From contig JAPDFW010000066.1 of assembly GCA_028826165.1 (NCBI GenBank), positions 248,001 to 312,000 of the forward strand: 64,000 bases of DNA, written 5' to 3'. Each line of letters starts with the position of its first letter. The stretch's first letter is position 1. This stretch comes from Anaeramoeba ignava BMAN (Eukaryota; Protista; Anaeramoebae). A model generated the notes under the pieces. That model was given only the letters and a program-made list of their open reading frames with translations, ran no database searches and was not told the DNA's origin. The translations under genes and the position numbers were made by a program. This document shows, piece by piece, positions 39,631 through 64,000 of this stretch.

Positions 39631-41457
39631 TTAAAAAATTAAGCATTTTTCTTTCTTTTCTTTCTTTTTAATTTGATTTTGATTTTGATTTTGATTATTA
39701 AATTTTTTAATTAATAAATCAAATAAATTTGGATTTGTTTGGTTTAATTGAAAATAATCAATTCCAATTTTAATTTCATCAATAATTTCTTTTGTAATTT
39801 GAATTTCATTTTTAATTTGATTTGAATAAATCCAATATTCAAATATTTGAAATGATTTATCACTTAATTCACTATAATCTGTAACTTTATTTGATTTATC
39901 TTCAGTTACAGATAAAAACATTCCTCGATATAATTCACTTCTCATTATTAATATTAATTTGGGAAATTTATATTGTTTTTCTTTTCTTTCAATTATAAAA
40001 TCTTTTTCATTTTCATTTTCATTTTCATTTAAATAAATTCTTTTCATTGTTTCTTCAATTTTTTCATTTGAATTTATAATTTCTTTAATTTCAGAATATA
40101 ATTTTGGATTTATTATTCTGTTTGAATAAATCATTTCAAATATTTGATTTAGATTCTTGAATTGATTTTTTGAAATAATTTCTTGAAGTTTTTCAATTTC
40201 ATTTTGATTTTGATTTAATCTATAATTCAATATTAATTTATGAGCTTCAATTATTTCTCCATTTTTGGTTTTAAATGAAATATTGCAAAATTCTTTTCTT
40301 TCAAATAATTTTAACAAATCTTCTTCAAGATTGGAAAAAGGAGGAGGAGAATAATAAAGAAATGTGTTTTCATCTCCACAATAAATATGATAATAAGAAA
40401 TATTTTCATTAAATCTTAATTTAGGAAGTTCAATTTGAATTGGAATTAATTGATCATTTGTATCTCCAGTTCCTAATTGACCAAAAGAATTATTTCCAAA
40501 TCCAATCAATTTTGAATTTGGAAGTTAAAATCAAAGTATGATTAAGTCCAACAGAAAAATCAAGAATATCATCATCATTTCCAAATAAAGATGATTTGAT
40601 TTCAGTAAATTCATAAGTATCTTCAGTTTTGCCAAGTCCATTATATCTATAATCTCCACATGAATAAAGTTTTCTTTTTGGATTTTGATTTTGATCTTCA
40701 ATCAACATTATTGAATATAAACTTCCACATTTGATATCAATTATTTTGCCTTTTGGAATATTTTGGATTTTGGTTAATTTTTTGAGTTCTTCTCCATTTC
40801 TTGATTCTCCTAATCCAATTTGTCCAGAAGTATTATCACCACATCCAAATAATTCTTGATTTGAATTTAAAAGAAAAACATGAAATGAAGAATTTCCTGA
40901 AAATATTTTAGAAACATTTTTCATCATTAAAATTGGTTTTTCTGTTTTTGAAAGTGTTTTATAATCAACACCAAATTGGCCAGAATAATTTGCACCAATT
41001 CCATAAACATTTTGATTTGAAGTTAATAAATAAATCGAACTGTCTCCAGAAACAATATCTTCAATTATTCTATCATTTGTATTTTTGATTAATGATGAAA
41101 TATTGATAAATTCTTTTGGATTTTTTAACTTAATATCATATCCTTTGGCAAATACATTTCCTTCTATTGTTAAAATAGCTTCATTTGAATAACCAACAGT
41201 TACTTTTTGAATATTTTCTTCAATTTGGATTTTTCAGGATTTTGATTTGAATCATTTTCACTTAAATATTCTATTGCTTTTCCATTTTTAAAAAGGAAAA
41301 TTGTTGAAAATTCTTCATCTGATGAAATTTGTTTAATTTGTTTTTCATTTTCATTTTCATTTTCAAATTTAAATTGAATTGGTTTTGTTATTTTTTCTGG
41401 TTCATTTTTGATAAGAATTGGATATTTATTTGAACCAAAAAATAAACAATCATTCAT
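39631..41457 (-). CDS. RCC1-repeat / tandem BTB-like protein copy A, CaaX tail (CLIF); apparent frameshifts
   Basis: RCC1 blades (GxNxxGQLG, SVGxxHTLIL), BTB-like IEAHKLIL and FPKLILIMRSELYRGMF; ends KKKEKKEKCLIF*. Confidence 0.82.
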
Positions 41458-41528
41458 TTTTGAAAAGAAAAAAATGAAAAAAATGAAAAATGTTTTTTGG
41501 AATTCTAATTTTATTGATAATTTCTTGT

Positions 41529-43377
41529 TTAAAAAATTAAGCATTTTTCTTTCTTTTCTTTCTTTTTAATTTGATTTTGATTTTGATTTTGATTATTAAA
41601 TTTTTTAATTAATAAATCAAATAAATTTGGATTTGTTTGATTTAATTGAAAATAATCAATTCCAATTTTAAGTTCATCAATAATTTCTTGTGTAATTTGA
41701 ATTTCATTTTTAATTTGATTTGAATAAATCCAATATTCAAATATTTGAAATGATTTATTACTTAATTCACTATAATCTGTAACTTTATTTGATTTATCAT
41801 TTGCTACAGATAAAAACATTCCTCGATATAATTCACTTCTCATTATTAATATTAATTTAGGAAATTTATATTGTTTTTCTTTTCTTTCAATTATAAAATC
41901 TTTTTCATTTTCATTTTCATTTTCATTTAAATAAATTCTTTTCATTGTTTCTTCAATTTTTTCATTTGAATTTATAATTTCTTTAATTTCATGAATATAA
42001 TTTTGGATTTATAATTCTGTTTGAATAAATCATTTCAAATATTTGATTTGATTCTTTTAATTGATTTTTTTGAAATAATTTCTTGAAGTTTTTCAATTTC
42101 ATTTTGATTTTGATTTAATCTATATTTCAATATTAATTTATGAGCTTCAATTATTTCTCCATTTTTGGTTTTAAATGAAATATCACAAAATTCTTTTCTT
42201 TCAAATAATTTTATCAAATCTTCTTCAAGATTGGAAAAAGAAGGAGGAGAATAATAAATAAATGATTTATTAAATCCACAAAGAATGTGATAATTAGAAA
42301 CGTTTTCATTAAATCTTAATTTAGGAAGTTCAATTTGAATTGGAATTGATTGATCATTTGTATCTCCAGTTCCTAATTGACCATAAAAATTACCTCCAAA
42401 TGAAATTAATTTTCCATTTGATGTTAAAATCAAAGTATGATTAAATCCAACAGAAAAATCAAGAATATTATCATCATTTTCAAATAAAGATGATTTTATT
42501 TCAGTAAATTCATAACTTTTTTTATCTTTGCCAAGTCCATTAAATTTAGAATTTCCACATGAATAAAGTTTTCTTTTTGGATTTTCGATTTTGGTTTTGA
42601 TTTTCAATCAACATTATTGAATGAGAATATCCACATTGAATATCAATTATTTTGCCTTTTGGAATATTTTGGATTTTGGTTAATTTTTGGATTTTTGTTT
42701 CTTCTTGTTCTGTTATTGATTCTCCTAATCCAAGTTGACCATATCTATTATCACCACATCCAAATAATTCTTGATTTGAATTTAAAAGAAAAATAGAATG
42801 TGAAGAAATTCCTGAAAATATTTTAAAAACATTTTTCATCATTAAAATTGGTTTTTTTGTTTTTTTAAGTGTTTTATAATCAAAACCAAGTTGACCAACT
42901 TGATTTAAACCAATTCCATAAACATTTTGATTTGAAGTTAATAAGTAAATCGAACTGTCTCCAGAAACAATATCTTCAATTATTCTATCATTTGTATTTT
43001 TGATTAATGATGAAATATTGATAAATTCTTTTGGATTTTTTAACTTAATATCATATCCTTTTGCAAATACATTTCCTTCTATTGTTAAAATAGCTTCATT
43101 TGAATAACCAACAGTTACTTTTTGAATATTTTCTTCAATTTGGATTTTTTCAGGATTTTGATTTAAATCTTCTTCATTTGAATATTCTATTGCTTTTCCA
43201 TTTTCAAAAAGGAAAATTGATGAAAAATAACCTGATGAAATTTGTTTAATTTCATTTTCATTTTCATTTTCATTTTCATTTTCAAATTTAAATTGAATTG
43301 GTTTTGTTATTTTATCTGGTTTCATTTTTGATAAGTTTTGGGTATTGATTTATACCAAAAAATAAACAATCATTCAT
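41529..43377 (-). CDS. RCC1-BTB protein copy B, CaaX tail; apparent frameshifts
   Basis: Same motifs as copy A across ORFs 42546-43325, 42035-42607 and 41529-41945. Confidence 0.82.
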
Positions 43378-43426
43378 TTTTAAAAAGAAAAAAAATGAAA
43401 AAAAATGAAAAAATGAAAAAAAGTTT

Positions 43427-45046
43427 TTAAATTAAATAAGTCTCAAGTCCGTCAACAATCCATTTATTATAGGAACCAGCTAAATAACTTTGAGATTCAT
43501 TTGGTCCTTCTTTAATTCCCGTAGGCAAATTGTAACTAAAACCAAAACTTGAACCTCCACCTTTTAAATTCTCTTTTAACCAAAAATCATTTCCTCCTCC
43601 AAAACTTGGACCATAATTTAAATAAGAATAAATTGATTGTTTTTGATGTGCTTGTTTAATTGTAAACTTTGCAGGTATTCTATCTCCTTTATCATTTCTT
43701 AATGAAAAAATAAATGCACTTGAGTCATTAATATATTTTCCTTTTGTGGAATGTTTAAATCCAACTTGAGTAAAACCTCCAAAAATAAAATTATCTTTTG
43801 TTTTGATAATAACTAATGTTTTTCCTTTACCATCAACTGCTTTATGCCATTTCTGAGAATTAAATCCATCTCTTTTTGCTGAAAATCCTTTCTTCATTTT
43901 AGAAAAAAAATCATTATCATTTATCCATTCTTTCAATTTTTTAATATATTCAATATCTTTCACAATTTCGGAATCTGCAAATTGTGGAAAATTCTTTTTG
44001 ATTTCTTCCAATTTCTTTTCATATTCCAAATCTTTTTGATATTGTTCTTGATATTTATCAAAAATAGGTTTCATTTCTTCAATTTCTTTGTTTTTGTGTT
44101 CAATTTGTTTATCTTTTTCTTTAATTTGTTTATCATTTTCTTTAATTTTTCTTTCTTTTTCTTTAATTTTTCTTTGATTTTCTTGATCTTGAATTTGAAA
44201 AATAGTTCTTTCAAAATTAATTGAAAAAGATTTAGGAAGAAAAAAATCAAATTGTTTTAATTTATCAAAATCTTGTTTTGAAATTGAATCTTTATCAAAT
44301 AATGAATAAAAAGAATGAAATAATCTTTTCTTTTCAATTCCTTTTTCTTTTTCTTTCTTTCCTTTTAATCTTTCATTTCTTTTTTCAATCCAATTATTTA
44401 AAAATTGAAAAAAATCAAATTGAAAAATTTCTTTTTTTTCTTGTTTAAATTGAATAAATTTGATAATTTCTTCTTTAGTTAAATTGAATAAATTTTCATT
44501 ATTTTGAATTTGGGAAAAATTTTGATTTATTAATTCAAAACATTTTATTTCAATTTCATTTGAATTTAAATTTCGATTTTGGAAAAAAAATTGGAAAAAA
44601 TTTGAATAATTAATTGAATTTGAAATTTTTTTTTGAATAATTTCTTTCAATAAATTTAATTTAAAATAAATTGAAATTTCCAATAATTGGATAAGATCTT
44701 CTTGATTCTCAAAAGAAATATTTCCATAATAAATATAACTTAAAATTGATTCCATTTCTTTTTTATTAAATTGATTTAAAAAAATTTTATCAATATCATT
44801 TTTTCCTTTTAATAACTTATTAAAAAAAGGAGATCTTGAAGATAAAATTGATTTATGAACTTTAATTTCAAAAGGATTTGATTCATTCTCAACAAAAATT
44901 GAAAAATCTTTAAATGAATTTCCATTTAAAAGGTTTGAATAATTTTTAATTAAATTTTTTGTTACTTTTTTTTCTAAATTTTTCATTTCATTTTCATTTT
45001 GATTTTGATTTGCATTTTCAATTTTGTTCTTATTATTATTATCCAT
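43427..45046 (-). CDS. BTB - coiled coil - TLDc protein
   Basis: BTB IKVHKSILSSRSPFF; TLDc RDGFNSQKWHKAVDGKGKTLVIIKT...YGPSFGGG; intact 539 aa. Confidence 0.88.
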   Translation of the reverse strand: MDNNNKNKIENANQNQNENEMKNLEKKVTKNLIKNYSNLLNGNSFKDFSIFVENESNPFEIKVHKSILSSRSPFFNKLLKGKNDIDKIFLNQFNKKEMESILSYIYYGNISFENQEDLIQLLEISIYFKLNLLKEIIQKKISNSINYSNFFQFFFQNRNLNSNEIEIKCFELINQNFSQIQNNENLFNLTKEEIIKFIQFKQEKKEIFQFDFFQFLNNWIEKRNERLKGKKEKEKGIEKKRLFHSFYSLFDKDSISKQDFDKLKQFDFFLPKSFSINFERTIFQIQDQENQRKIKEKERKIKENDKQIKEKDKQIEHKNKEIEEMKPIFDKYQEQYQKDLEYEKKLEEIKKNFPQFADSEIVKDIEYIKKLKEWINDNDFFSKMKKGFSAKRDGFNSQKWHKAVDGKGKTLVIIKTKDNFIFGGFTQVGFKHSTKGKYINDSSAFIFSLRNDKGDRIPAKFTIKQAHQKQSIYSYLNYGPSFGGGNDFWLKENLKGGGSSFGFSYNLPTGIKEGPNESQSYLAGSYNKWIVDGLETYLI

Positions 45047-45251
45047 TTTGTTTTGTTGTTTTTGTTTTTGTTTTTGTTTTTTAAAAAAAGGAAAAAAATG
45101 AAAAAAAAAAATTTAAATAAAAAAAATGAATAAAAAAAGTGGATTTTGAAAATAAATAAAAATATAAAAAATGAGAATAAATTTAAATTAATAATTAATT
45201 CAATTTTCTTTTTAATTTATTATTTTAAATTAATTTATTAATAAATTATTA

Positions 45252-47209
45252 TTATTTTTTATTATTCTCAATTTTGGACATTGTACTAAAAATATCATCT
45301 TGTTTAGTTTGTTGTTTTTTTGGTTTAGAACTAAAAATATCATCATCATCATAACCGTCATCGTCTTCATCCTAATAAAAAATATTTATAAATTATTTCA
45401 ATAAATTTTTCCTTATTATTAAATTAAATATTTAATCTTTACAAGAAATAAATTATCAGTTTGAAAAAAAGATTTTTGAGTTTGAGTTGTAGTTTTTGAA
45501 AAATTTTGAAAAACATTATCCAATAGTTTTTTATCTTTTTTTGGTTTTGAATCTTCAAATAATGGATTTTCTTCTTTTGTTTTATCTTTTGTTTTATCTT
45601 TTGGTTTTGTTTCTTTAATTAAATTATCTTTCTTTTTTGGTGATTTCTGTTTTTTCTCTTTTGGTTTTGTTTGGGATAATAGATCATATTCTTCTTGTAT
45701 TTCTTCTTGTATTTCTTCTTTTTGAGGATTAGATAACGAATTATTTTCTTCATAATTTTCACTTCTTTGAAATGAGGTTTCATCTTCAAAAAGTGCATTT
45801 TGTTCTGTTGATTTATCAGATTCTAATATTGATTGTTGCAAGAATTCTTTTGTATTCTTTTCATGTTGAATTTCTTGCCTTAATGAATTCAATTCAGATT
45901 GAAGTTGAATTTCCTTTTCTTTGAATTTTTGATTTTGATTTTGAAGTAAATTATTAGATTCATAAAGTTTGCGAATCTCTTCTTTATTATTTTGAATAAT
46001 ATCTTCTTTTTCTGTAATAGTTTGTTGCAATCTGTTAACATTTTCTTTAGATAAATTACTTTCCATTTGTGATTGCTTCAAATTAATTAAATTTTCATTT
46101 GTTCTTTTTTTTTCTTCTTCTTTAAGTCTTTGCATCTCTAAATCTTTTGTTGATAATTTACTCTTTAAACTTTCAATTTCTTGTTTTTGGTTTTGATTTT
46201 CATTTTTTAAATCTTGATTTTTAGATTGAAATGACTTGATTGATTTATCTCTTCTTTTAATTTTCTTATCTTTTTCTTTAATTTGTTTATCATTTTCTTT
46301 AATTTTTCTTTCTTTTTCTTTAATTTTTCTTTGATTTTCTTGATCTTGAATTTGAAAAATAGTTCTTTCAAAATTAATTGAAAAAGATTTAGGAAGAAAA
46401 AAATCAAATTGTTTTAATTTATCAAAATCTTGTTTTGAAATTGAATCTTTATCAAATAATGAAAAAAAAGAATGAAATAATCTTTTCTTTTCAATTCCTT
46501 TTTCTTTTTCTTTCTTTCCTTTTAATCTTTGATTTCTTTTTTTAATCCAATTATTTAAAAATTGAAAAAAATCAAATTGAAAAATTTCTTTTTTTTCTTG
46601 TTTAAATTGAATAAATTTGATAATTTCTTCTTTAGTTAAATTGAATAAATTTTCATTATTCTGAATTTGGGAAAAATTTTGATTTATTAATTCAAAACAT
46701 TTTATTTCAATTTCATTTGAATTTAAATTTCGATTTTGGAATAAAAATTGGAAAAAATTTGAATAATTAATTGAATTTGAAATTTTTTTTTGAATAATTT
46801 CTTTCAATAAATTTAATTTAAAATAAATTGAAATTTCCAATAATTGGATAAGATTTTCTTGATTCTCAAAAGAAATATTTCCATAATAAATATAACTCAA
46901 AATTGATTCCATTTCTTTTTTATTAAATTGGCTTAAAAAAATTTTATCAATATCATTTTTTCCTCTTAAAAACTTATTAAAAAAAGGAGATCTTGAAGAT
47001 AAAATTGATTTATGAACTTTAATTTCAAAAGGATTTGGCTTATTCTCAACAAAAATTGAAAAATCATTAAATGAATTTCCATTTAAAAGGTTTGAATAAT
47101 CTTTAATTAAATTTTTTGTTACTTTTTTTTCTAAATTTTTCATTTCATTTTCAATTTTGTTTTGATTTTGATTTGCATTTTCAATTTTGTTCTTATTATT
47201 ATTATCCAT
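45252..47209 (-). CDS. Chimeric gene: BTB N-terminal half (paralogous to 43427-45046) fused to the C-terminal half of the 22983-25613 gene
   Basis: Near-identical to the adjacent BTB gene up to KEKDK. From KQEIESLKSK (junction ~46187) it is near-identical to 24063-25597, including that gene's terminal intron and last exon (stop 45252-45254). Confidence 0.85.
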
Positions 47210-47609
47210 TTTGTTTTGTTGTTTTGTGTTTTTTGTTTTTTGCTTATTAAAAAAAGGAAAAAAATGAAAAAAAAAAATTTAAATAAAAAAAATGAATAAA
47301 AAAAGTGGATTTTGAAAATAAATAAAAATATAAAAAATGAGAATAAATTTAAATTAATAATTAATTTAATTTTCTTTTTAATTTATTATTTTAAATTAAT
47401 TTATTAATAAATTATTATTATTTTTTATTAATTTTTTTTATTAAAAAAAAAGGAAAAATTATTTTAATTTAATTTTTAATTTAATTTTTTTTTTTGGAAT
47501 TTAAAAATTATTAATAAATTTAAATTTTAAAACAAATTTCCAAATTAATATTAATTCAATTTAATTCAAAAAAAAAGATAAAATTTTAATTTCAAAAAAA
47601 TCAATTTTC

Positions 47610-49870: not shown

Positions 49871-49915
49871 TATTTTTTGAAAGAGAAAAAATAAATTGGG
49901 AAAAGAAAAAAAGGA

Positions 49916-51515
49916 TTATTTTGACAAATAATTTTCTTGAAGAGCATCATTCAAAACTGTTTCCAAAGTCTCCAAATCGATAGTCATATTATTTCCCTGA
50001 GAATTTCCAAATACTTTCCAATATTCACAACCCGTTGTATGAGCAAGCCAAAATGTAGCACCATTTGTACTTACATATCTGGGTTGGTGAAATTCAATCA
50101 TCATTGGATTAGATAAGCTGAAAATGATATTATAAAAGGCTCCACCATGCAAACCAATAGTAAGTTTTGCACTTGAAAAAAATTTGACCAAATCCTTCAA
50201 ATCTGGGTAATCTTTGTGAGAAAATATCACAAGTCGATCTTTAAATCTTTTTTCAAGATAATTTATTACTTCTTCTTGATTCAAAAGATTTCTTCCGTTA
50301 TGGTTGTTAACTCTTGAGATATAAACTATTTTTTGAGGATCTGGATCTCGATATTCGTCAAAATTATCGGTTTCCAAAATGGATTTTAACAAAAATTGTT
50401 TGAGCTCAGGAAGTTTTCTTGGATGCTCACTGGGGATTCCGCAAGGGAAAAGGAAGTAATCGGCATGAATTGAATCTGAGTAAGTTTCATCGATGATCTC
50501 AACATTAAAATCCTTTTTGATAAAATCATAAAATTTATAAATAATCTCGTCTCTTGGCTTTTTTACGAATATTGTCCAGCCTTTATCCTTGATAAAGGGT
50601 CTAATTTGCATTAAAAAGCAACCGACATGATCGATCCAGTGTTGGAATTCATCAGCCCATTCAGTATTTGCAACGACAAGTTTGTCGAAATGTTTGATAT
50701 TTTCTGTTGGTTTTCCATAATTTGAAAGACGGATACTTTGTTTACATAAAGGAGCTTTTGAAAAACTAAAATCGTAAAGAAAAGAGATCTTTCCAAGCAT
50801 GATATCACTATAATTGAAATATACTTTCCCTTTTTCCTTATCGATCACTTGGTTATATCTTTTTTTCTCAATCGAAATAAATGTGTTAAAACTGCTTTCA
50901 TCCAAAAAATGAGGCGCATCTAAAACAAACGGGTCGTAATGAATATAGTAATCAATTTGAGTGTCGGAAATGTTTTCTTTTGTGATTTTCGGTTGTTTTC
51001 CATGATTTGGTTCTTCGAAAAATTTCAGATCACGTTCATCATAAGTTACATATGGATTTTGATATTGTGAAAAAAGAGTATCAAATTCAAAATCAGGATT
51101 TGTTAGAAAAATTTCCCTTTTTTTTTCTTCTAAATCTTGATTTTTTTGTTTAATTTTTTTTATTTCATCTTCTAATTCTTTAATTTTTTCTTCTAAATCT
51201 TGATTGCTTTGTTTAATTTTTTTTATTTCATCTTCTGATTCCTTGATTTGTTTTAGAAGCACTTGCTTTTCCTCTTTTTCTTGTGCTAATTCTTTCTCCA
51301 GATTGGGTTTTTTTTCTTTGATAAACCCAAATAAAAAAAATTTAATTTAATTCAAAAATCTTATTTTGTTTTAAATAAATTTCCTTACTTGAAAAGACCC
51401 CATAATTTGTGATCCAAAACAACACAAAACATAAAATAGAAAAAAATACAAAAATTAAAAATTTATGATTTTTGATGAGCTGAAAAGAAGTTGATGAATC
51501 ATTTTCGGTTCTCAT
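49916..51515 (-). CDS. Glycosyltransferase family 61 (DUF563), type II membrane protein, 2 exons
   Basis: Exon 1 from ATG 51515 encodes the TM segment FLIFVFFLFYVLCCFG with a GTAAGG donor. Then a coiled-coil stem, FQHWID, IVYISR...RNLLNQEEV, FSSAKLTIGLHGGAFYNIIF and MMIEF. Confidence 0.85.
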
Positions 51516-51544
51516 TTTTTGAAAAGAAAAAAATGAAAAAAAAT

Positions 51545-51770
51545 TTTTTTTTAAATTTTAATTTTATTTTTATTTTAATTTTAATTTTAATTTTAATTTT
51601 ATTTTTAATTTTAATTTTAATTTTAATTTTTAATTTTAAATTTTAATTTTAATTTTAATTTTAATTTTAATTTTAATTTCAATTTTGATTTTGATTTTAA
51701 TTTTAATTTTAATTTTAATTTTAATTTTAATTTTAATTTAAATTTTAATTTTAATTTTAATTTAAATTTT
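51545..51770. repeat. (TTTTAA/TTTTGA)n intergenic microsatellite; similar tracts at ~53605-53710, 57535-57785, 59615-60050 and 61875-62350
   Basis: Visible directly; several tracts are continuous with the NQ-coding tail of RCC1-BTB genes. Confidence 0.9.
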
Positions 51771-53572
51771 AATTTTGATTATTAAATTTATTAATTAATA
51801 AATCAAATAAATTTGGATTTGTTTGATTTAATTGAAAATAATCAATTCCAATTTTAATTTCATTAATTATTTCTTTTGTAATTTGAATTTCATTTTTAAT
51901 TTGATTTGAATAAATCCAATATTCAAATATTTGAAATGATTTATTACTTAATTCACTATAATCTGTAACTTTATTTGATTTATCTTCAGTTACAGATAAA
52001 AACATTCCTCGATATAATTCACTTCTCATTATTAATATTAATTTTGGAAATTTATATTGTTTTTCTTTTCTTTCAATAATAAAATCTTTTTCATTTTCAT
52101 TTTCATTTTCATTTTCATTTAAATAAATTCTTTTCATTGTTTCTTCAATTTTTTCATTTGAATTTATAATTTCTTTAATTTCAGAATATAATTTTGGATT
52201 TATTTTGGAATTGTTTGAATAAACCATTTCAAATATTTGATTTGATTCTTTAATTGATTTTTTTGAAATTATTTCTTGAAGTTTTTCAATTTGATTTTGA
52301 TTTTGTTTTAATCTATATTTCAATATTAATTTATGAGCTTCAATTATTTCTCCATTTTTGGTTTTAAATGAAATATTACAAAATTCTTTTCTTTTAAATA
52401 ATTTTATCAAATCTTCTTCAAGATTGGAAAAAGGAAGAGGAGAATAATAAAGAAATGATCTCGAAACACCACAAGAAACATGATAATAAGAAATATTTTC
52501 ATTAAATCTTAATTTAGGAAGTTTAATTTGAATAGGAATTAATTGATCTATTGTATCTCCAGTTCCTAATTGACCAAAATAATTATATCCAAATCCAATT
52601 AATTTCCCTTTTGTTGTTAAAATCAAAGTATGAGCATTTCCACAAGAAAAATCAATAATATTATCATCATAATCATTTTCAAATAAAGATGATTTTATTT
52701 CAGTAAATTCATAAGTATTTTCATCTTTGCCAAGTCCATTATATCGATAATTTCCACATGAATAAAGTTTTCTTTTTGGATTTTGATTTTGATTTTCTTC
52801 TTCAATCAACATTATTGAATGAAAATATCCAGATTGAATATCAATTATTTTGTCTTTTGGAATATTTTGGATTTTGGTTAATTTTTGGATTTTTTTGTCT
52901 TTTCTTGATTCTCCTAATCCAAGTTGACCATATAGATTATCACCGCATCCAAATAATTCTTGATTTGAATTTAAAAGAAAAACAGAATTTGAAGAAATTC
53001 CTGAAAATATTTTAGAAACATTTTTCATCATTAAAATTGGTTTTTCTGTTTTTTTAAGTGTTCTAAAATCAACACCAAGTTGACTATTTTTATTAGAACC
53101 AATTCCATAAACATTTTGATTTGAAGTTAATAAGTAAATTGATTTAGCTCCAGAAACAATATCTTCAATTATTCTATCATTTGTATCTTTTGATTAATAA
53201 TGAAATATTGATAAATTCTTCTGGATTTTCTGAATTAATATCTTTTCCTTTGGCAAATACATTTCCTTCTTTTGTTAAAATAGCTTCATTTTGATAACCA
53301 ACAGTTACTTTTTGAATATTTTCTTCAATTTGGATTTTTTCAGGATTTTGTTTTGAATCATTTTCATTTAAATATTCTATTGCTTTTCCATTTTTAAAAA
53401 GGAAAATTGTTGAAAATAAACCTGATGAAATTTGTTTAATTTGTTTTTCATTTTCATTTTCATTTTGATTTTCATTTTCAAATTTAAATTGAATTGGTTT
53501 TGTTATTTTATTTGATTCATTTTTGATAAGAATTGGATAATTATTTGAACCAAAAAATATAATTTCATTCAT
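51769..53572 (-). CDS. RCC1-BTB protein copy C, no CaaX; one frameshift ~53190
   Basis: ORFs 53177-53572 and 51769-53031; ends FNNQN*. Confidence 0.85.
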
Positions 53573-53671: not shown

Positions 53672-55528
53672 TTAATTTTGATTTTGATTTTGATTTTGAT
53701 TTTGATTTTGATTATTAAATTTTTTAATTAATAAATCAAATAAATTTGGATATGTTTGATTTAATTGAAAATAATCAATTCCAATTTGAATTTCATTAAT
53801 TATTTCTTGTGTGATTTGAATTTCATCTTTAATTTGATTTGAATAAATCCAATATTCAAATATTTGAAATGATTTATTACTTAATTCACTATAATCTGTA
53901 ACTTTATTAGAAGTATCATTTGTTACAGATAAAAACATTCCTCGATATAATTCACTTCTCATTATTAATATTAATTTAGGAAATTTATATTGTTTTTCTT
54001 TTCTTTCAATTATAAAATCTTTTTCATTTTTATTTTCATTTTCATTTAAATAAATTCTTTTAATTGTTTCTTCTATTTTTTCATTTGAATTTATAATTTC
54101 TTTAATTTCAGAATATAATTTTGGATTTATTTTGGAATTGTTTGAATAAATTATTTCAAATATTTGATTTGATTCTTTAATTGATTTTTTTGAAATTATT
54201 TCTTGAAGTTTTTCATTTTGATTTTGTTTTAATCTATATTTCAATATTAATTTATGAGCTTCAATTATTTCTCCATTTTTGGTTTTAAATGAAATATTGC
54301 AAAATTCTTTTCTTCTAAATAATTTTATCAAATCTTCTTCAAGATTGGAAAAAGGAAGAGGAGAATAATAAAGAAATGAATTCCGATATCCACAAGAAAG
54401 ATGATAATTGGAAATATCTTCATTAAATCTTAATTTAGGAAGTTCAATTTGAATAGGAATTAATTGATAATTTCCATTTATAATCCCTAATTGGCCATGT
54501 CTATTATTACCAAATCCAATCAATTTTGATTTGGAAGTTAAAATCAAGGTATGCCTATTTCCAACAGAAAAATCAAGAATATTATCATCATTTTCAAATA
54601 AATATGATTTGATTTCAGTAAATTCATAAGTATTTTCATTTTTTCCAAGTCCATTATAATGGTAATCTCCACATGAATAAAGTTTTCTTTTTGGATTTTC
54701 ATTTTCATTTTCATTTTCAATCAACATTATTGAATGCATAGATACTGATTGAATATCAATTATTTTGCCTTTTGGAATATTTTGGATTTGTGTTAATTTT
54801 TGGATTTTTGTTTGTTTTCTTGATTCTCCTAATCCAAGTTGACCAGATCCATTATCACCACATCCAAATAATTCTTGATTTGAATTTAAAAGAAAAACAT
54901 GACAAGAAGAATTTCCTGAAAATATTTTAGAAACATTTTTCATCATTAAAATTGGTTTTTCTGTATTTTTAAGTGTTTCAGAATCAAAACCAAGTTGACC
55001 ATAAAAATTACCACCAATTCCATAAGCATTTTGATTTGAAGTTAATAAGTAAATCGAACTCCATCCAGAAACAATATCTTCAATTATTCTATCATTTTTA
55101 TCTTTGATTAATGATGAAATATTGATAAATTCATTTGGATTTTTTGTATTAATATCTCTTCCTTTGGCAAATACATTTCCTTCTTTTGTTAAAATAGCTT
55201 CATTTCGAACATCAGCAGTTACTTTTTGAATATTTTCTTTAATTTGGATTTTTTCAGGATTTTGATTTGAATCTCTTAAATATTCTATTGCTTTTCCATT
55301 TTTAAAAAGGAAAATTGTTGAAAAATCTCCTGTTGAAATTTGTTTAATTTGTTTTTCATTTTCATTTTCATTTTCATTTTCATTTTCATTTTCATTTTCA
55401 TTTTCATTTTCATTTTCATTTTCATTTTCATTTTCAAATTTAAATTGAGTTGGTTTTGTTATTCTATTTGATTTATTTTTGATAAGTTTTGGATTTTTAT
55501 TTCTTCCAAAAAATAAAATTTCATTCAT
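53672..55528 (-). CDS. RCC1-BTB protein copy D, intact, no CaaX
   Basis: Start MNEILFFG at 55528 by comparison with paralogs; ends (NQ)n*. Confidence 0.88.
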   Translation of the reverse strand: MNEILFFGRNKNPKLIKNKSNRITKPTQFKFENENENENENENENENENENENENENEKQIKQISTGDFSTIFLFKNGKAIEYLRDSNQNPEKIQIKENIQKVTADVRNEAILTKEGNVFAKGRDINTKNPNEFINISSLIKDKNDRIIEDIVSGWSSIYLLTSNQNAYGIGGNFYGQLGFDSETLKNTEKPILMMKNVSKIFSGNSSCHVFLLNSNQELFGCGDNGSGQLGLGESRKQTKIQKLTQIQNIPKGKIIDIQSVSMHSIMLIENENENENPKRKLYSCGDYHYNGLGKNENTYEFTEIKSYLFENDDNILDFSVGNRHTLILTSKSKLIGFGNNRHGQLGIINGNYQLIPIQIELPKLRFNEDISNYHLSCGYRNSFLYYSPLPFSNLEEDLIKLFRRKEFCNISFKTKNGEIIEAHKLILKYRLKQNQNEKLQEIISKKSIKESNQIFEIIYSNNSKINPKLYSEIKEIINSNEKIEETIKRIYLNENENKNEKDFIIERKEKQYKFPKLILIMRSELYRGMFLSVTNDTSNKVTDYSELSNKSFQIFEYWIYSNQIKDEIQITQEIINEIQIGIDYFQLNQTYPNLFDLLIKKFNNQNQNQNQNQNQN

Positions 55529-55581
55529 TTTTGAAAAGAAAAAAAAATGAAAAAAATGAAAAAAATAATTTTGGATTTTTA

Positions 55582-57504
55582 TTAAAAAATTAAGCATTTC
55601 TCTTTCGAATTATTGTTTTGATTTTGATTATTAAATCTATTAATTAATAAATCAAATAAATTTGGATATGTTTGATTTAATTGAAAATAATCAATTCCAA
55701 TTTGAATTTCATCAATTATTCCTTGTGTGATTTGAATTTCATCTTTAATTTTATTTGTGTAAATCCAATATTCAAATATTTGAAATGATTTATTACTTAA
55801 TTCACTATAATCTGTAACTTTATTTGATGTATCTTCAGTTACAGATAAAAACATTCCTCGATATAATTCACTTCTCATTATTAATATTAATTTAGGAAAT
55901 TTATATTGTTTTTCTTTTCTTTCAATTATAAAATCTTTTTCATTTTCATTTTCATTTTCATTTAAATAAATTCTTTTAATTGTTTCTTCAATTTTTTCAT
56001 TTGAATTTATAATTTCTTTAATTTCAGAATATAATTTTGGATTTATTTTGGAATTGTTTGAATAAATCATTTCAAATATTTGATTTGATTCTTTAATTGA
56101 TTTTTTTGAAATTATTTCTTGAAGTTTTTCAATTTGATTTTGATTTTGTTTTAATCTATATTTCAATATTAATTTATGAGCTTCAATTATTTCCTCATCT
56201 TCTGTTTTAAATGAAATATCACAAAATTCTTTTCTTTCAAATAATTTTATCAAATCTTCTTCAAGATTGGAAAAAGAAAGAGGAGAATAATAAAGAAATG
56301 AATTGAAATATCCACAAGAAACATGATAATTAGAAATATTTTCATTAAATCTTAATTTAGGAAGTTCAATTTGAATAGGAATTAATTGATCTTTTGTATC
56401 TACAGTTCCTAATTGACCATAAAAATTACTTCCAAATCCAATTAATTTTGAATTGGATGTTAAAATCAAAGTATGAACATTTCCAACAGAAAAATCAAGA
56501 ATATTATCATCATCTTCAAATAAAGATGATTTGATTTCAGTAAATTCATAAGTATCTTCACCTTTGCCAAGTCCATTATGTCGATAATAACCACATGAAT
56601 AAAGTTTTCTTTTTGGATTTTGATTTTGATTTTGATTTTGATTTTGATTTTGATTTTGATTTTGATTTTGATTTTGATTTTGATTTTGATTTTGATTTTG
56701 ATTTTGATTTTCAATCAACATTATTGAATGATCATCTCCACATTGAATATCAATTATTTTACCTTTTGGAATATTTTGGATTTTGGTTAATTTTTGGATT
56801 TCTATTTCATTTCTTGATTCTCCTAATCCAAGTTGACAATAATAATTATATCCGCATCCAAATAATTCTTGATTTGAATTTAAAAGAAAAACAGATTGTG
56901 AAGAGTTTCCTGAAAATATTTTAGAAACATTTTTCATCATTAAAATTGGTTTTTCTGTTTTTGGAAGTGTTTTAGAATCAAAACCAAGTTGACCATCAGT
57001 ATTTGAACCAATTCCATAAACATTTTGATTTGAAGTTAATAAGTAAATTGATTTGGCTCCAGAAACAATATCTTGAATTATTCTATCATTTTTATCTTCA
57101 ATTAATGATGAAATATTGATAAATTTATTTGGATTTTTTGAATTAATATCTCTTCCTTTGGCAAATACATTTCCTTCTTTTGTTAAAATAGCTTCATTTT
57201 GATAACCAACAGTTACTTTTTGAATATTTTCTTCAATTTGGATTTTTTCAGGATTTTGTTTTGAATCATTTTCATTTAAATATTCTATTGCTTTTCCATT
57301 TTTAAAAAGGAAAATTGTTGAAAATAAACTTGATGAAATTTGTTTAATTTGTTTTTCATTTTCATTTTCATTTTCATTTTCATTTTCATTTTCATTTTCA
57401 TTTTCATTTTCAAATTTAAATTGAATTGGTTTTTTTATTTTATCTGGTTTATTTTTGATAAGTTTTGGTTTTCGATTTGCACCAAAAAATAAACAATCAT
57501 TCAT
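55582..57504 (-). CDS. RCC1-BTB protein copy E, intact, CaaX tail
   Basis: 640 aa; ends NSKEKCLIF*. Confidence 0.9.
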   Translation of the reverse strand: MNDCLFFGANRKPKLIKNKPDKIKKPIQFKFENENENENENENENENENEKQIKQISSSLFSTIFLFKNGKAIEYLNENDSKQNPEKIQIEENIQKVTVGYQNEAILTKEGNVFAKGRDINSKNPNKFINISSLIEDKNDRIIQDIVSGAKSIYLLTSNQNVYGIGSNTDGQLGFDSKTLPKTEKPILMMKNVSKIFSGNSSQSVFLLNSNQELFGCGYNYYCQLGLGESRNEIEIQKLTKIQNIPKGKIIDIQCGDDHSIMLIENQNQNQNQNQNQNQNQNQNQNQNQNQNQNQNPKRKLYSCGYYRHNGLGKGEDTYEFTEIKSSLFEDDDNILDFSVGNVHTLILTSNSKLIGFGSNFYGQLGTVDTKDQLIPIQIELPKLRFNENISNYHVSCGYFNSFLYYSPLSFSNLEEDLIKLFERKEFCDISFKTEDEEIIEAHKLILKYRLKQNQNQIEKLQEIISKKSIKESNQIFEMIYSNNSKINPKLYSEIKEIINSNEKIEETIKRIYLNENENENEKDFIIERKEKQYKFPKLILIMRSELYRGMFLSVTEDTSNKVTDYSELSNKSFQIFEYWIYTNKIKDEIQITQGIIDEIQIGIDYFQLNQTYPNLFDLLINRFNNQNQNNNSKEKCLIF

Positions 57505-57741
57505 TTTTGAAAATGAAAAAAATGAAAAATGATTTTTTGATTTTAATTTTAATTTTGATTTTAATTTTGAATTTTAATTTTAATTTTGATTTTAATTTTA
57601 ATTTTGATTTTGAATTTTAATTTGATTTTAATTTTGATTTTGATTTTGATTTTAATTTTAATTTTAATTTTAATTTTAATTTTAATTTTAATTTTAATTT
57701 TAATTTTAATTTTGATTTTAATTTTAATTTTAATTTTGATT

Positions 57742-59586
57742 TTAATTTTGATTTTGATTTTGATTTTGATTTTGATTTTGATTTTGATTATTAAATTTGT
57801 TAATTAATAAATCAAATAAATTTGAATATGTTTGATTTAATTGAAAATAATCAATTCCAATTTGAATTTCATTAATTATTTCTTGTGTGATTTGAATTTC
57901 TTCTTTAATTTTATTTGAATAAATCCAATATTCTAATATTTGAAATGATTTATTACTTAATTCACTATAATCTGTAACTTTATTTGATTTATCATTTGTT
58001 ACAGATAAAAACATTCCTCGATATAATTCACTTCTCATTATTAATATTAATTTGGGAAATTTATATTGTTTTTCTTTTCTTTCAATTATAAAATCTTTTT
58101 CATTTTCATTTAAATAAATTCTTTTAATTGTTTCTTCAATTTTTTCATTTGAATTTATAATTTCTTTAATTTCAGAATATAATTTTGGATTTATTTTGGA
58201 ATTATTTGAATAAATCATTTCAAATATTTGATTTGATTCTTTAATTGATTTTTTTGAAATTATTTCTTCAAGTTTTTCAATTTCATTTTGATTTTCAATT
58301 TGATTTAATCTATATTTCAATATTAATTTATGAGCTTCAATTATTTCTCCATTTTCGGTTTTAAATGAAATATCACAAAATTCTTTTCTTTTAAATAATT
58401 TTATCAAATCTTCTTCAAGATTGGAAAAAGAAAGAGGAGAATAATAAAGAAATGAATTGTAATATCCACAAGAAAGATGATAATTGGAAATATTTTCATT
58501 AAATCTTAATTTAGGAAGTTCAATTTGAATTGGAATTAATTGATCTTTTGTATCTACAGTTCCTAATTGACCATAAAAATTACTTCCAAATCCTATTAAT
58601 TTTGAATTGGAAGTTAAAATCAAAGTATGATTATTTCCAACAGAAAAATCAAGAATATCATCATTTTCAAATAAAGATGATTTGATTTCAGTAAATTCAT
58701 AAGCATTATGAAATATTTCAAGTCCATTAAATCTATAATAACCACATGAATAAAGTTTTCTTTTTGGATTTTGATTTTGATTTTGATTTTGATTTTCAAT
58801 CAACATTATTGAATGATCATCTCCACATTGAATATCAATTATTTTACCTTTTGGAATATTTTGGATTTTGGTTAATTTTTGGATTTTTGTTTCATTTCTT
58901 GATTCTCCTAATCCAAGTTGACCATGATGATTATCTCCGCATCCAAATAATTCTTGATTTGAATTTAAAAGAAAAACAGAATTTGAAGAAATTCCTGAAA
59001 ATATTTTAGAAACATTTTTCATCATTAAAATTGGTTTTTCTGTTTTTGGAAGTGTTTTAGAATCAAAACCAAGTTGACCATCAGTATTAGAACCAATTCC
59101 ATAAACATTTTGATTTGAAGTTAATAAGTAAATCGATTCAGATCCAGAAACAATATCTTGAATTATTCTATCATTTTTATCTTCAATTAATGATGAAATA
59201 TTGATAAATTCTTTTGGATTTTCTGGATTAATATCTTTTCCTTTGGCAAATACATTTCCTTCTTTTGTTAAAATAGCTTCATTCTTTTCACCAACAGTTA
59301 CTTTTTGAATATTTTCAATTTGGATTTTTTCAGGATTTTGTTTTGAATATTCTTCATTTAAATATTCTATTGCTTTTCCATTTTTAAAAAGGAAAATTGT
59401 TCCAAAATAACTTGATGAAATTTGTTTAATTTGTTTTTCATTTTCATTTTCATTTTCATTTTCATTTTCATTTTCATTTTCATTTTCATTTTCAAATTTA
59501 AATTGAATTGGTTTTGTTATTTTATTTGATTTATTTTTGATAAGTTTTGGTTTTCGATTTGCACCAAAAAATAAACAATCATTCAT
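57742..59586 (-). CDS. RCC1-BTB protein copy F, intact, no CaaX
   Basis: 614 aa; ends (NQ)n*. Confidence 0.9.
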   Translation of the reverse strand: MNDCLFFGANRKPKLIKNKSNKITKPIQFKFENENENENENENENENENEKQIKQISSSYFGTIFLFKNGKAIEYLNEEYSKQNPEKIQIENIQKVTVGEKNEAILTKEGNVFAKGKDINPENPKEFINISSLIEDKNDRIIQDIVSGSESIYLLTSNQNVYGIGSNTDGQLGFDSKTLPKTEKPILMMKNVSKIFSGISSNSVFLLNSNQELFGCGDNHHGQLGLGESRNETKIQKLTKIQNIPKGKIIDIQCGDDHSIMLIENQNQNQNQNPKRKLYSCGYYRFNGLEIFHNAYEFTEIKSSLFENDDILDFSVGNNHTLILTSNSKLIGFGSNFYGQLGTVDTKDQLIPIQIELPKLRFNENISNYHLSCGYYNSFLYYSPLSFSNLEEDLIKLFKRKEFCDISFKTENGEIIEAHKLILKYRLNQIENQNEIEKLEEIISKKSIKESNQIFEMIYSNNSKINPKLYSEIKEIINSNEKIEETIKRIYLNENEKDFIIERKEKQYKFPKLILIMRSELYRGMFLSVTNDKSNKVTDYSELSNKSFQILEYWIYSNKIKEEIQITQEIINEIQIGIDYFQLNQTYSNLFDLLINKFNNQNQNQNQNQNQNQN

Positions 59587-60016
59587 TTTTGAAAAAGAAA
59601 AAAATGAAAAATGATTTTTTGATTTTAATTTTAATTTTGATTTTAATTTTGAATTTTAATTTTGATTTTGATTTTAATTTTAATTTTAATTTTAATTTTA
59701 ATTTTAATTTTGATTTTGATTTTGATTTTAATTTTGATTTTAATTTTAATTTTAATTTTAATTTTAATTTTAATTTTAATTTTAATTTTGATTTTGATTT
59801 TGATTTTAATTTTGATTTTGATTTTGATTTTGGTTTTAATTTTAATTTTAATTTTAATTTTAATTTTAATTTTAATTTTAATTTTAATTTTGATTTTAAT
59901 TTTAATTTTAATTTTGATTTTAATTTTGATTTTGATTTTGATTTTGATTTTGAATTTTAATTTTGATTTTAATTTTAATTTTAATTTTGATTTTAATTTT
60001 AATTTTAATTTTGATT

Positions 60017-61844
60017 TTAATTTTGATTTTGATTTTGATTTTGATTTTGATTATTAAATTTGTTAATTAATAAATCAAATAAATTTGGATATGTTTGATT
60101 TAATTGAAAATAATCAATTCCAATTTGAATTTCATTAATTATTTCTTGTGTGATTTGAATTTCTTCTTTAATTTTATTTGAATAAATCCAATATTCTAAT
60201 ATTTGAAATGATTTATTACTTAATTCACTATAATCTGTAACTTTATTTGATTTATCATTTGTTACAGATAAAAACATTCCTCGATATAATTCACTTCTCA
60301 TTATTAATATTAATTTAGGAAATTTATATTGTTTTTCTTTTCTTTCAATAATAAAATCTTTTTCATTTTCATTTTCATTTTCATTTAAATAAATTCTTTT
60401 AATTGTTTCTTCAATTTTTTCATTGGAATTTATAATTTCTTTAATTTCAAAATATAATTTTGGATTTATTTTGGAATTGTTTGAATAAATCATTTCAAAT
60501 ATTTGATTTGATTCTTTAATTGATTTTTTTGAAATAATTTCTTGAAGTTTTTCAATTTCATTTTGATTTTCAATTTGATTTAATCTATATTTCAATATTA
60601 ATTTATGAGCTTCAATTATTTCCTCATCTTCTGTTTTAAATGAAATATTACAAAATTCTTTTCTTTCAAATAATTTTATCAAATCTTCTTCAAGATTAGA
60701 AAAAGGAGGAGGAGAATAATAAAGAAATGAATGCAAACCACCACAAGAAACATGATAATTGAAAATATCTTCATTAAATCTTAATTTAGGAAGTTCAATT
60801 TGAATTGGAATTAATTGATCTATTGTATCTCCAGTTCCTAATTGACCATATTCATTATATCCAAATCCTATCAATTTTGAATTGGATGTTAAAATCAAAG
60901 TATGAACATTTCCAACAGAAAAATCAAGAATATTATCATTATCATTTTCAAATAAATATGATTTGATTTCAGTAAATTCATAAGTATTTTCACCTTTGCC
61001 AAGTCCATTAAATTTAGAATATCCACATGAATAAAGTTTTCTTTTTGGATTTTCATTTTCATTTTCATTTTCAATCAACATTATTGAAAAAGAAATTCCA
61101 GATTTAATATCAATTATTTTGCCTTTTGGAATATTTTGGATTTTGGTTAATTTATTGATTACTCTTTCTTCTTTTCTTGATTCTCCTAATCCAAGTTGAC
61201 TAAAATAATTCCAGCCACATCCAAATAATTCTTGATTTGAATTTAAAAGAAAAACGTGTTTTGAAGAAATTCCTGAAAATATTTTAGAAACATTTTTCAT
61301 CATTAAAATTGGTTTTTTTGTTTTTTTAAGTGTTTTAGAATCAAAACCAAGTTGACCATCAGTATTAGAACCAATTCCATAAGCATTTTGATTTGAAGTT
61401 AATAAGTAAATCGATTCAGATCCAGAAACAATATCTTGAATTATTCTATCATTTTTATCTTCAATTAATGATGAAATATTGATAAATTTATTTGGATTTT
61501 TTGAATTAATATCATATTCCTTTTGCAAATACATTTCCTTCTTTTGTTAAAATAGCTTCATTCTTTTCACCAACAGTTACTTTTTGAATATTTTCTTCAA
61601 TTTGAATTTTTTCAGGATTTTGATTTGAATCATTTTCATTTAAATATTCTATTGCTTTTCCATTTTTAAAAAGGAAAATTGTTGAAAAATAACCTGTTGA
61701 AATTTGTTTAATTTGTTTTTTATTTTCATTTTCATTTTCATTTTCATTTTCAAATTTAAATTGAATTGGTTTTTTTATTTTATTTGGTTTATTTTTGAAA
61801 AGTTTTGGATATTGATTTAAACCAAAAAATAAAATTTCATTCAT
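60017..61844 (-). CDS. RCC1-BTB protein copy G, no CaaX; one frameshift ~61520
   Basis: Start MNEILFFG at 61844, continuing in ORF 60017-61534. Confidence 0.85.
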
Positions 61845-62376
61845 TTTTAAAAAGAAAAAAATGAAAAAATGATTTTTTGGTTTTGGTTTTAATTTGAATT
61901 TTAATTTTAATTTTAATTTTAATTTTAATTTTAATTTTGATTTTAATTTTAATTTTAATTTTGATTTTAATTTTAATTTTAATTTTAATTTCAATTTTAA
62001 TTTTGATTTTAATTTTAATTTTAATTTTAATTTTGATTTTAATTTTGATTTTGATTTAAATTTTAATTTTGATTTTAATTTTAATTTTGATTTTAATTTT
62101 AATTTTAATTTTAATTTTGATTTTAATTTTAATTTTAATTTTAATTTTAATTTTGATTTTAATTTTAATTTTAATTTTAATTTTAATTTTAATTTTAATT
62201 TTAATTTTAATTTTGATTTTAATTTTGATTTTAATTTTAATTTTAATTTTGATTTTAATTTTAATTTTAATTTTAATTTTGATTTTAATTTTGATTTTGA
62301 TTTAAATTTTGATTTTAATTTTAATTTTAATTTTGATTTTGATTTTGATTATTAAATTTTAAATTTTGGAATTTTA

Positions 62377-64000
62377 TTAAAAAATTAAGCATTTCTCTTT
62401 CGAATTATTGTTTTGATTTTGATTATTAAATTTCTTAATTAATAAATCAAATAAATTTGGATTTGTTTGATTTAATTGAAAATAATCAATTCCTCTTTTA
62501 ATTTCATCAATTATTCCTTGTGTAATTTGAATTTCATCTTTAATTTGATTTGAATAAATCCAATATTCAAATATTTGAAATGATTTATTACTTAATTCAC
62601 TATAATCTATAACTTTATTAGATTTATTATCAGTTATAGATAAAAACATTCCTCGATATAATTCACTTCTCATTATTAATATTAATTTAGGGAATTTATA
62701 TTGTTTTTCTTTTCTTTCAATAATAAAATCTTTTTCATTTTCATTTTCATTTTCATTTTCATTTAAATAAATTCTTTTCATTGTTTCTTCAATTTTTTCA
62801 TTTGAATTTATAATTTCTTTAATTTCAGAATATAATTTTGGATTTATTTTGGAATTATTTGAATAAATCATTTCAAATATTTGATTTGATTCTTTAATTG
62901 ATTTTTTTGAAATAATTTCTTGAAGTTTTTCAATTTGATTTTGATTTTGATTTAATCTATATTTCAATATTAATTTATGAGCTTCAATTATTTCCTCATC
63001 TTCTGTTTTAAATGAAATATTACAAAATTCTTTTCTTCGAAATAATTTTATCAAATCTTCTTCAAGATTGGAAAAAGAAGAAAAAAAGGAGAATAATAAA
63101 GAAATGATCTCGAAACTCCACAAGAAAGATGATAATCGGAAATATTTTCATTAAATCTTAATTTAGGAAGTTCAATTTGAATTGGAATTGATTGATCTTC
63201 TGTATCTCCAGTTCCTAATTGACCAAATTTATTGTATCCAAATGCTATTAACATTCCATTAATTGTTAAAATCAAAGTATGAGCATTTCCAACAGAAAAA
63301 TCAAGAATATCATCATTTTCAAATAAAGATGATTTGATTTCAGTAAATTCATAAGTATATTCACCTTTGCCAAGTCCACTATATTTATAATCTCCAGTTG
63401 AATAAAGTTTTCTTTTTTGATCTTCATTTCCAATCAACATTATTGAATGATTGTCTCCACATTGAATATCAATTATTTTACCTTTTGGAATATTTTGGAT
63501 TTTGGTTAATTTTTGGATTTTTTTGTCTTTTCTTGATTTTCCTAATCCAAGTTGACCATATTGATTATATCCGCATCCAAATAATTCTTGATTTGAATTT
63601 AAAAGAAAAACATGATGTGAAGAATTTCCTGAAAATACTTTAGAAACATTTTTCATCATTAAAATTGGTTTTTCTGTTTTTGGAAGTGTTTTAGAATCAA
63701 AACCAAGTTGACCATCAGTATTAGAACCAATTCCATAAACATTTTGATTTGAAGTTAATAAGTAAATTGATTTGGCTCCAGAAACAACATCTTCAATTAT
63801 TCTATCATTTTTATCTTCAATTAATGATGAAATATTGATAAATTCTTTTGGATTTTCTGAATTAATATCTCTTCCTTTTGCAAATACATTTCCTTCTTTT
63901 GTTAAAATAGCTTCATTCTTTTCACCAACAGTTACTTTTTGAATATTTTCAATTTGGATTTTTTCAGGATTTTGTTTTGAATCTTCTTCATTTAAATATT
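62377..64000 (-). CDS. RCC1-BTB protein copy H (5' end outside the window), CaaX tail; frameshift ~63080
   Basis: ORFs 63051-63659 and 62377-63123; ends KEKCLIF*. Confidence 0.85.

Follow-up and report, generated by a model that had tools for sequence, protein, structure and literature searches.

An RCC1-propeller and tandem-BTB gene family of Anaeramoeba ignava, hypervariable on one modelled propeller face, as a candidate repertoire of cytosolic binding proteins

We analysed a stretch of 64,000 nucleotides from the genome of the anaerobic amoeba Anaeramoeba ignava BMAN (assembly GCA_028826165.1, contig JAPDFW010000066.1, positions 248,001 to 312,000 of the forward strand), hereafter called the window and numbered from its own first letter, which holds an array of eight paralogous genes between positions 39688 and 63998, all on the minus strand and all encoding an RCC1-like beta-propeller followed by two BTB domains. 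The genes belong to a family of roughly 1,300 copies in which 35 codons change their amino acid far faster than silent sites diverge, and in which the fast sites of the propeller lie on a single modelled face while the BTB tail is kept under purifying selection. We consider it somewhat better than an even chance (about 55%) that the family is an A. ignava-specific, germline-encoded repertoire of binding proteins in the cytosol, whose output would most likely run through a CUL3 ubiquitin ligase.

A first-pass annotation, made from the letters of the window alone, had described eight co-oriented paralogs with nearly identical framework and BTB halves and radically varying short loops. A tblastn search with copy F, the reference copy whose 614-residue open reading frame (ORF) also numbers all residues given below, found eight such copies (A to H, Table 1), and the identities agree with the description, with a pairwise value of 0.29 at 35 fast sites versus 0.884 at 526 framework sites. 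In the BTB half, 166 of the 206 positions are invariant among the eight copies. The four sets of loop sequences that had been listed (after ELFGCG, after YS(C/T)G, after FG and after the CG of the last blade) are all present in the ORF translations, the set after ELFGCG being DNTS/DNRY/DNLY/DNGS/YNYY/DNHH/WNYF/YNQY, and the loops are indeed rich in aromatic residues, Tyr, Phe and Trp making up 22% of the residues at hypervariable sites versus 10% in the framework. The count of eight genes has to be qualified, since uninterrupted ORFs are found in D, E and F only and A, B, C, G and H are frame-broken as assembled.

Rates of change were analysed in an alignment of 30 intact copies, in which hypervariable codons were compared with framework codons. 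Thirty columns of this alignment have an entropy of at least 2 bits, and adjoining columns have an entropy of zero. Replacement differences per site (pN) reached 0.534 at hypervariable codons, compared with silent differences (pS) of 0.087 and a pN of 0.055 at 558 framework codons, and the BTB half, with a pN of 0.033 and a pS of 0.085 (pN/pS about 0.4), is under purifying selection. When changes were counted on a tree, 35 codons exceeded the gene-wide silent rate by 3.9 to 10.8 fold (Bonferroni <0.01), and replacement divergence at the fast codons was larger than framework silent divergence in 435 of 435 gene pairs, by 5.5 to 11 fold. The closest pair, the neighbouring copies E and F, differs at 17 of the 35 fast codons at a framework pS of 0.047. 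An artefact of silent-site saturation, a concern in a genome of 80% A+T, was rejected, as divergence at four-fold sites (p = 0.089, or 0.098 as a composition-corrected distance) is far below the saturation ceiling of 0.52; in the fast codons, the distance is 1.30 at position 1 and 1.11 at position 2, or 11–13 fold that at four-fold sites. Among 130 proteins we counted 123 distinct loop signatures, the seven repeats being the same genes entered twice, and positions within a loop are nearly independent of each other across copies. Compared with the expectation under A+T-biased neutral mutation, the fast sites are enriched in Tyr, Asp, Glu, Arg and Trp and depleted in Ile, Leu, Val and Met, which argues for selection on the residues present there.

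The positions of the fast sites were then placed on the predicted fold. Pfam assigns an RCC1-like domain and BTB to the intact copies: D and F match PF25390 at 2.5e-60 to 8.6e-64, with PF00415 and PF13540 above cut-off, and in copy E PF25390 scores 139 bits, under its cut-off of 150, with PF00415 and PF13540 passing. The AlphaFold2 (AF2) model of the copy F propeller has a predicted local distance difference test score (pLDDT) above 90 over residues ~90–385, with 26 of 28 strands called, and the closest solved folds found by Foldseek are the RCC1-like domains of RPGR, RCC1 and HERC2, at template modelling (TM) scores of 0.76–0.81. Each blade is an up-down meander of four strands (s1 to s4), so that the s1-s2 and s3-s4 connections lie on one face and the s2-s3 and s4-s1 connections on the opposite one; faces were assigned from this topology of the modelled strands, without coordinates. 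With this assignment, 28 of the 32 fast propeller sites fall among the 110 residues of s1-s2 or s3-s4 connections, the remaining four sit at strand ends bordering these connections, and none of the 80 residues in opposite-face connections is fast (Fisher 7.5e-8), in agreement with the earlier proposal that the variable loops share one propeller face. The face that binds Ran in RCC1 is probably the same one. Each blade contributes three variable elements, namely the motif Gxx[H/S], the motif GxNxxGQLG and a single residue just before strand 4. HMMER alignments match VGNNHT to CGWRHT of UVR8 and GFGSNFYGQLG to its GWGWNKFGQVG, motifs whose tryptophans and arginines form the chromophore and cross-dimer contacts in UVR8 (PMC5108777).

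The annotation had interpreted the array as a diversifying repertoire on a constant module, and this core stands: the fast sites occupy one propeller face, replacement lies far above silent divergence and the BTB half is under purifying selection. A scatter of variable sites at dN/dS (the ratio of replacement to silent rates) of 1 or below was not seen, the one-face sites diverging 5.5–11 fold beyond the silent divergence of the framework. Recruitment of CUL3 and an aim at viral, symbiont or prey proteins, which the same annotation had added, are putative.

The array in the window is one of many in the genome (42.8 Mb, about 20% G+C; the A+T content has been published as 80%, PMC11550330). A genome search found at least 72 copies of full length, about 85% identical, which are spread over many contigs and mostly stand in tandem. 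Copies were counted with a probe of 22 bases in the second BTB domain, which all 30 aligned copies contain without mismatch; it had 1,297 matches genome-wide with up to two mismatches allowed, and its reversed control had 0. We estimate the family at roughly 1,300 copies and about 2.4 Mb, or 5–6% of the A. ignava genome. The best protein matches are all A. ignava gene models, at 80–84% identity, carrying source names such as 'claret isoform a', 'btk-binding protein-related', 'regulator of chromosome condensation' or hypothetical. In a search of 1.84 billion representatives, all of the looked-up relatives with the same architecture at 35–59% identity were from A. ignava, and the nearest protein of another species was one of 1,590 residues from A. 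flamelloides, at 32% identity. When copy F was compared with recorded encoding contigs, the A. ignava genome being excluded, no match was on record. The probe matches, the tandem arrays and the finding of relatives at 35% identity or above in A. ignava only, among those looked up, together describe a lineage-specific tandem expansion. Two divergent A. ignava relatives with the source name 'protein aardvark' (P0123 and P0127) have extra N-terminal parts and lengths of 885–1096 residues, and one gene model (P0046), which may be a merged model, has Ras-family Pfam domains ahead of the RCC1-BTB part. Many arrays begin a few kb from a contig end (contigs C4, C5, C9, C10, C35, C37, C44, C52, C97 and C108 of our set); such arrays either break the assembly or sit near chromosome ends.

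The tail that follows the propeller matches PF00651 at 1.8e-12 in two stretches. The first full-length AF2 model had a pLDDT below 50 in this part, and a model of the 229-residue tail built with a more diverse tail alignment reached 90.4. Its best structural matches over the whole length are the single-chain tethered POZ dimers Miz1-BCL6 and Miz1-Nac1 (TM 0.56–0.59), and single BTB domains of BCL6, SPOP and KBTBD match at a TM of ~0.7 and a root-mean-square deviation of 2.1–2.6. The model suggests a dimer-like packing of the two BTBs within the chain, which would keep paralogs from cross-dimerising. The fast sites of the tail are residue 399 in BTB-A and, as the sole one in BTB-B, residue 531 (57994-57996) in the segment SVT(E/N/D)D, which toggles between Glu, Asn and Asp with 16 replacement and 0 silent changes and might correspond to the phi-x-E motif by which BTB adaptors contact CUL3. 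A CUL3 orthologue is encoded in the same genome, by an ORF whose best matches are Cullin-3 chains (4e-119) and whose product agrees at 100% identity with the A. ignava protein P0277, named 'cullin-3a-related'. Besides this single CUL3 gene there are one CUL1/2-like and four CUL4-like cullin genes, and two tandem cullin copies with introns lie at 231551-239837 of contig C57. The C-terminal ends of the family are of two types: in 20 of 120 paralogs the last residues are a polybasic stretch followed by CLIF, CSIF or CFIF, a CaaX-like, putative prenylation signal, and the remainder end in NQ repeats. In the window, A, B, E and H are of the first type and C, D, F and G of the second, and the type of end seems to depend on stops within an (AATCAA)n repeat.

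Under the mechanism that we propose, tandem duplication with exchange between neighbours would have produced the ~1,300 copies, each encoding a seven-bladed RCC1-like propeller and then two BTBs packed dimer-like within one chain. Selection for new amino acids would have nearly randomised about 32 positions in two loop classes of one face, the scaffold and the BTB tail being held constant. The tail would dock on A. ignava CUL3, as its most likely output, and each copy could in this way bring a different target to one ubiquitin ligase; the subset with polybasic and CLIF ends would carry a prenyl group and sit at membranes. In this scheme we infer that the variable face binds ligands, that the tail docks on CUL3 and that the subset is prenylated, as well as any role in defence or symbiont control. 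A more far-reaching version, which we regard as possible, with the odds clearly against it, is that of an antibody-like, germline-encoded intracellular system in a free-living protist that bears symbionts, in which more than 1,000 propeller faces would survey the cytosol for foreign proteins (viral, prey, symbiont or Legionella-type effector proteins) and pass them to one CUL3 ligase, with the prenylated subset stationed at phagosome or symbiosome membranes and the BTB pseudo-dimer preventing paralogs from cross-dimerising.

Several observations weigh against a repertoire of ligase receptors. In a test on each site's own silent changes, 0 sites were significant after correction (pooled local omega about 2.4), and silent diversity is 2–3 fold higher within two codons of fast sites, so that a local mutational or exchange process may contribute to the loop diversity. 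Docking on CUL3 is putative: the complex prediction for CUL3 residues 1–380 (P0277) with the copy F tail scored 0.70 and that for one unrelated control 0.57, a result that speaks neither for nor against it. In the assembly, frame breaks interrupt five of the eight window copies; those that fall in A-runs could be slips of the assembly, and other breaks, for example the +1 change of copy G at ~61516, are outside such runs. Furthermore, 0 of about 235 main-family proteins are listed with a transcriptome (EukProt) source, which CUL3 and two divergent relatives do have. This may reflect low expression, or a failure to assemble 1,300 near-identical transcripts, and we take it as a mild negative hint on transcription.

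The first two of these points would be expected if the loop diversity came mainly from targeted local hypermutation or from exchange of very short tracts, an explanation that we find unlikely and that would still leave room for a binding repertoire. At codons whose amino acid is conserved, silent diversity reaches 0.15 directly beside a fast site and 0.14 two codons away from it, versus 0.04–0.07 at greater distance. All four gametes are present in 48% of informative site pairs, and in 38% even within 20 bases (pairwise homoplasy index, PHI, p=0.016), which together with the star-like tree of the copies indicates that exchange between them is frequent; mosaic blocks are shared by neighbours, copy H matching F and G at residues 100–101 and E at residues 117–180. 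Nevertheless, any local mutational component, the silent excess being 2–3 fold, is too small for the 11–13 fold excess at the first two positions of fast codons, and mutation would not be expected to shift the composition of the fast sites towards Tyr, Asp, Glu, Arg and Trp. All four bases vary at these two positions, so that the single-base signature of a targeted process is missing and the one-base-class variation of diversity-generating retroelements (DGRs) is not what is seen; no DGR-like invariant template was found either, in a search limited to the paralogs themselves. Shuffling of whole loops as cassettes is likewise unsupported, because the positions within a loop are nearly independent.

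A different role for the same surface has also to be considered, in which the proteins would not act as ligase receptors. The partners of the variable RCC1 face would then come from the expanded small GTPases or the trafficking proteins of the amoeba itself, in a GEF-like or scaffolding function, and the tandem BTB would serve structure or oligomerisation only. In other organisms, Ran, Rab and Arf GTPases are targets of RCC1-like domains. The Rab, TBC and HOPS/CORVET sets of Anaeramoeba are expanded (PMC11550330), some copies carry a Rho-like polybasic and CaaX end, the best whole-tail matches are dimers of the BTB-ZF type, which do not use CUL3, and CUL3 docking is a putative step. We nevertheless judge this role improbable, as ~1,300 nearly randomised faces far exceed any endogenous target family, and endogenous partners would impose a co-evolutionary constraint that is at odds with the near-independence of the loop positions. 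The architecture is moreover that of RCBTB1/RCBTB2 and IBTK, which are CUL3 adaptors in animals and in which an RCC1-like propeller is also followed by BTB domain(s), many A. ignava copies having the source name 'btk-binding protein-related'. The likeness is one of architecture and source names, and the animal genes differ in being single-copy and conserved.

The fungal HET-D/E/R (HNWD) genes of Podospora, which are NLR-like, offer a parallel to the pattern of variation: a few hypervariable positions per blade lie on the interaction face of a beta-propeller, the scaffold hardly differs in nucleotide sequence, and repeats or genes exchange sequence with one another (PMC2873952, PMC4986451). This shared logic is the argument for a self/non-self system, acting in allorecognition or mating incompatibility as the HET-D/E WD40 genes do, which we consider very unlikely for A. 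ignava. The A. ignava propeller is of the RCC1 and not the WD40 type, no NACHT/STAND or death-effector domain accompanies it, and the variation is among ~1,300 genes, far above the copy number of known allorecognition loci, and not among the repeats or alleles of a few genes. To our knowledge, neither cell fusion nor sex is known in Anaeramoeba, which also counts against such a system.

As regards the coding capacity of the copies, in-frame TAA codons in most of them had raised the possibility of pseudogenes or of a variant genetic code, and this was rejected, as every one of these codons is downstream of the true stop, within an (AATTAA)n stretch that aligns to the NQ tail of copy F. Twenty-nine of the 30 central copies fetched were intact. 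Each copy carries about 92 substitutions relative to the consensus, and random placement of these would create about 8 stops; 0 of 3,000 simulated copies stayed open (P(no stop) <1/3000). Among flanking copies, which were not chosen for quality, 27 of 32 are unbroken over at least 200 residues, and this, set against the ~8 stops expected, indicates that open frames are kept by selection. A pseudogene fraction is clear all the same, from the broken window copies and from many fragment gene models. That the family is a selfishly amplified tandem repeat without current function, its variable loops reflecting relaxed constraint, would suit these broken copies and fragments, the missing transcript support among the main-family proteins listed and the frequent position of arrays at contig ends, and we give it hardly any credence, since relaxed constraint cannot lift replacement 11–13 fold over four-fold silent sites and since the open frames, the pN/pS of ~0.4 in the tail and the non-neutral loop composition all speak against it.

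Expansions of MATH-BTB and F-box adaptors in nematodes and grasses were reportedly described by Thomas in 2006. In these families the substrate-binding domain contains positively selected sites, and proteins of pathogens have been suggested as their targets (PMC8120010, PMC4091423, PMC4334554). The A. ignava family resembles them in joining a constant, putatively cullin-docking module to a selected binding domain, in being lineage-specific and tandem, and in its birth and death of copies; as in adaptive expansions of ligase adaptors, replacement exceeds silent divergence only in the recognition domain and the BTB tail is under purifying selection. It differs from them in that the variable module is an RCC1 propeller and not MATH or FBA, in that the tail is a tandem BTB, and in its ~1,300 copies at ~85% identity, its share of ~5–6% of the genome and its nearly random loop positions. 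With UVR8, RCC1, HERC2 and RPGR the family shares the seven-bladed fold (TM 0.7–0.8), and the dimer-interface tryptophans and arginines of UVR8 line up with the fast positions of its Gxx[H] and GxNxxG motifs; whereas those positions are conserved for one partner in these proteins, they are the least conserved part in A. ignava. New in comparison with these systems are the use of an RCC1 propeller for diversification, the doubled BTB, the size of the expansion and the organism that carries it. RCC1/BTB proteins are not mentioned in the main text of the Anaeramoeba papers that were searchable, the genome paper included, and PANTHER names of RCC1/BTB type are listed in a supplementary table of lateral gene transfer candidates in A. 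flamelloides.

If the repertoire reading is correct, the family, at ~1,300 copies and a few percent of the genes, would be among the largest hypervariable receptor-like families known in unicellular eukaryotes, and its RCC1 propeller would be a fold that is not known to have been diversified for recognition before. Beyond nematodes and plants, the concept of a rapidly evolving binder on a constant ligase adaptor would then apply to a deep-branching relative of the metamonads, and it would become testable how an amoeba that bears symbiosomes separates partners, prey and parasites. The scaffold, a natural library of propellers randomised on one face, may also interest protein engineers.

Table 1 Features of the RCC1-propeller and tandem-BTB array in the window (window coordinates; residues numbered on copy F).
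Feature	Position	Strand	tblastn span	Remarks
Copy A	39631-41544	-	39688-41457	RCC1-propeller and tandem BTB, broken; 2 net frame changes, near 41232 and 40515; tail polybasic + CLIF
Copy B	41529-43334	-	41586-43334	Broken; three high-scoring segment pairs in frames -3/-1/-3; indels near 42587 and 42058-41992; CLIF end
Copy C	51769-53572	-	51793-53572	Full length apart from a single +1 frame change near 53190
Copy D	53672-55528	-	53702-55528	Intact; open frame to 55597 (641 aa); family-type start MNEILFFG at 55528
Copy E	55582-57504	-	55609-57504	Intact, 640 aa; blade 6 with long NQ insert; CLIF end
Copy F	57742-59586	-	57745-59586	Intact, 614 aa; reference copy and tblastn query
Copy G	60017-61844	-	60056-61844	Single +1 frame change near 61516, within the blade-3 hypervariable loop
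Copy H	62377-64000	-	62428-63998	+5 indel near 63080; first ~74 codons past the window end; CLIF end
Seven-bladed RCC1-like propeller, residues 1-385	58432-59586	-		Copy F; AlphaFold (AF2) model and Foldseek
Loop DNHH, residues 218-221	58924-58935	-		Copy F; blade 5 s3-s4 (GxNxxGQLG-type), hypervariable
Loop YYRF, residues 283-286	58729-58740	-		Copy F; blade 6 s3-s4, hypervariable
Residues 318-319 (NN of VGNNHT)	58630-58635	-		Copy F; align with W/R of UVR8 GWRHT
Loop SNFY, residues 335-338	58573-58584	-		Copy F; blade 7 s3-s4, hypervariable
Loop YYN, residues 375-377	58456-58464	-		Copy F; closing blade s1-s2 hairpin (Gxx-type), hypervariable
Tandem BTB tail, residues 386-614	57745-58431	-		Copy F; short BTB-A and full BTB-B, predicted model
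Polybasic + CLIF ends	39631-39670, 41529-41570, 55582-55620, 62377-62415	-		Copies A, B, E and H

The gap between copies B and C holds unrelated genes, namely two of BTB-TLDc type (43427-45046 and the chimeric BTB gene at 45419-47209) and a GT61 glycosyltransferase (49916-51262). BTB/BACK-TLDc genes at 38088-39119 and 43427-45046, both on the minus strand, flank and interrupt the array and form a second, smaller local BTB family. The BTB gene at 45419-47209 (minus strand) shares a long, almost identical coiled-coil segment with a gene at 23143-24984 on the plus strand, and looks like a young chimera from a segmental duplication. The intergenic stretches of the array (59547-60057, 61894-62355 and others) contain long AT-rich microsatellites in which the local G+C content falls to ~5%, and which would translate as runs of the type LILI, NFNF and DFDF. 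Elsewhere in the window, the gene for the largest subunit of RNA polymerase II (8544-15936, minus strand) is split by intein-like inserts and encodes a C-terminal domain of YSPSSPRT octapeptides; the inserts fit the published richness of Anaeramoeba in inteins (PMC10710043).

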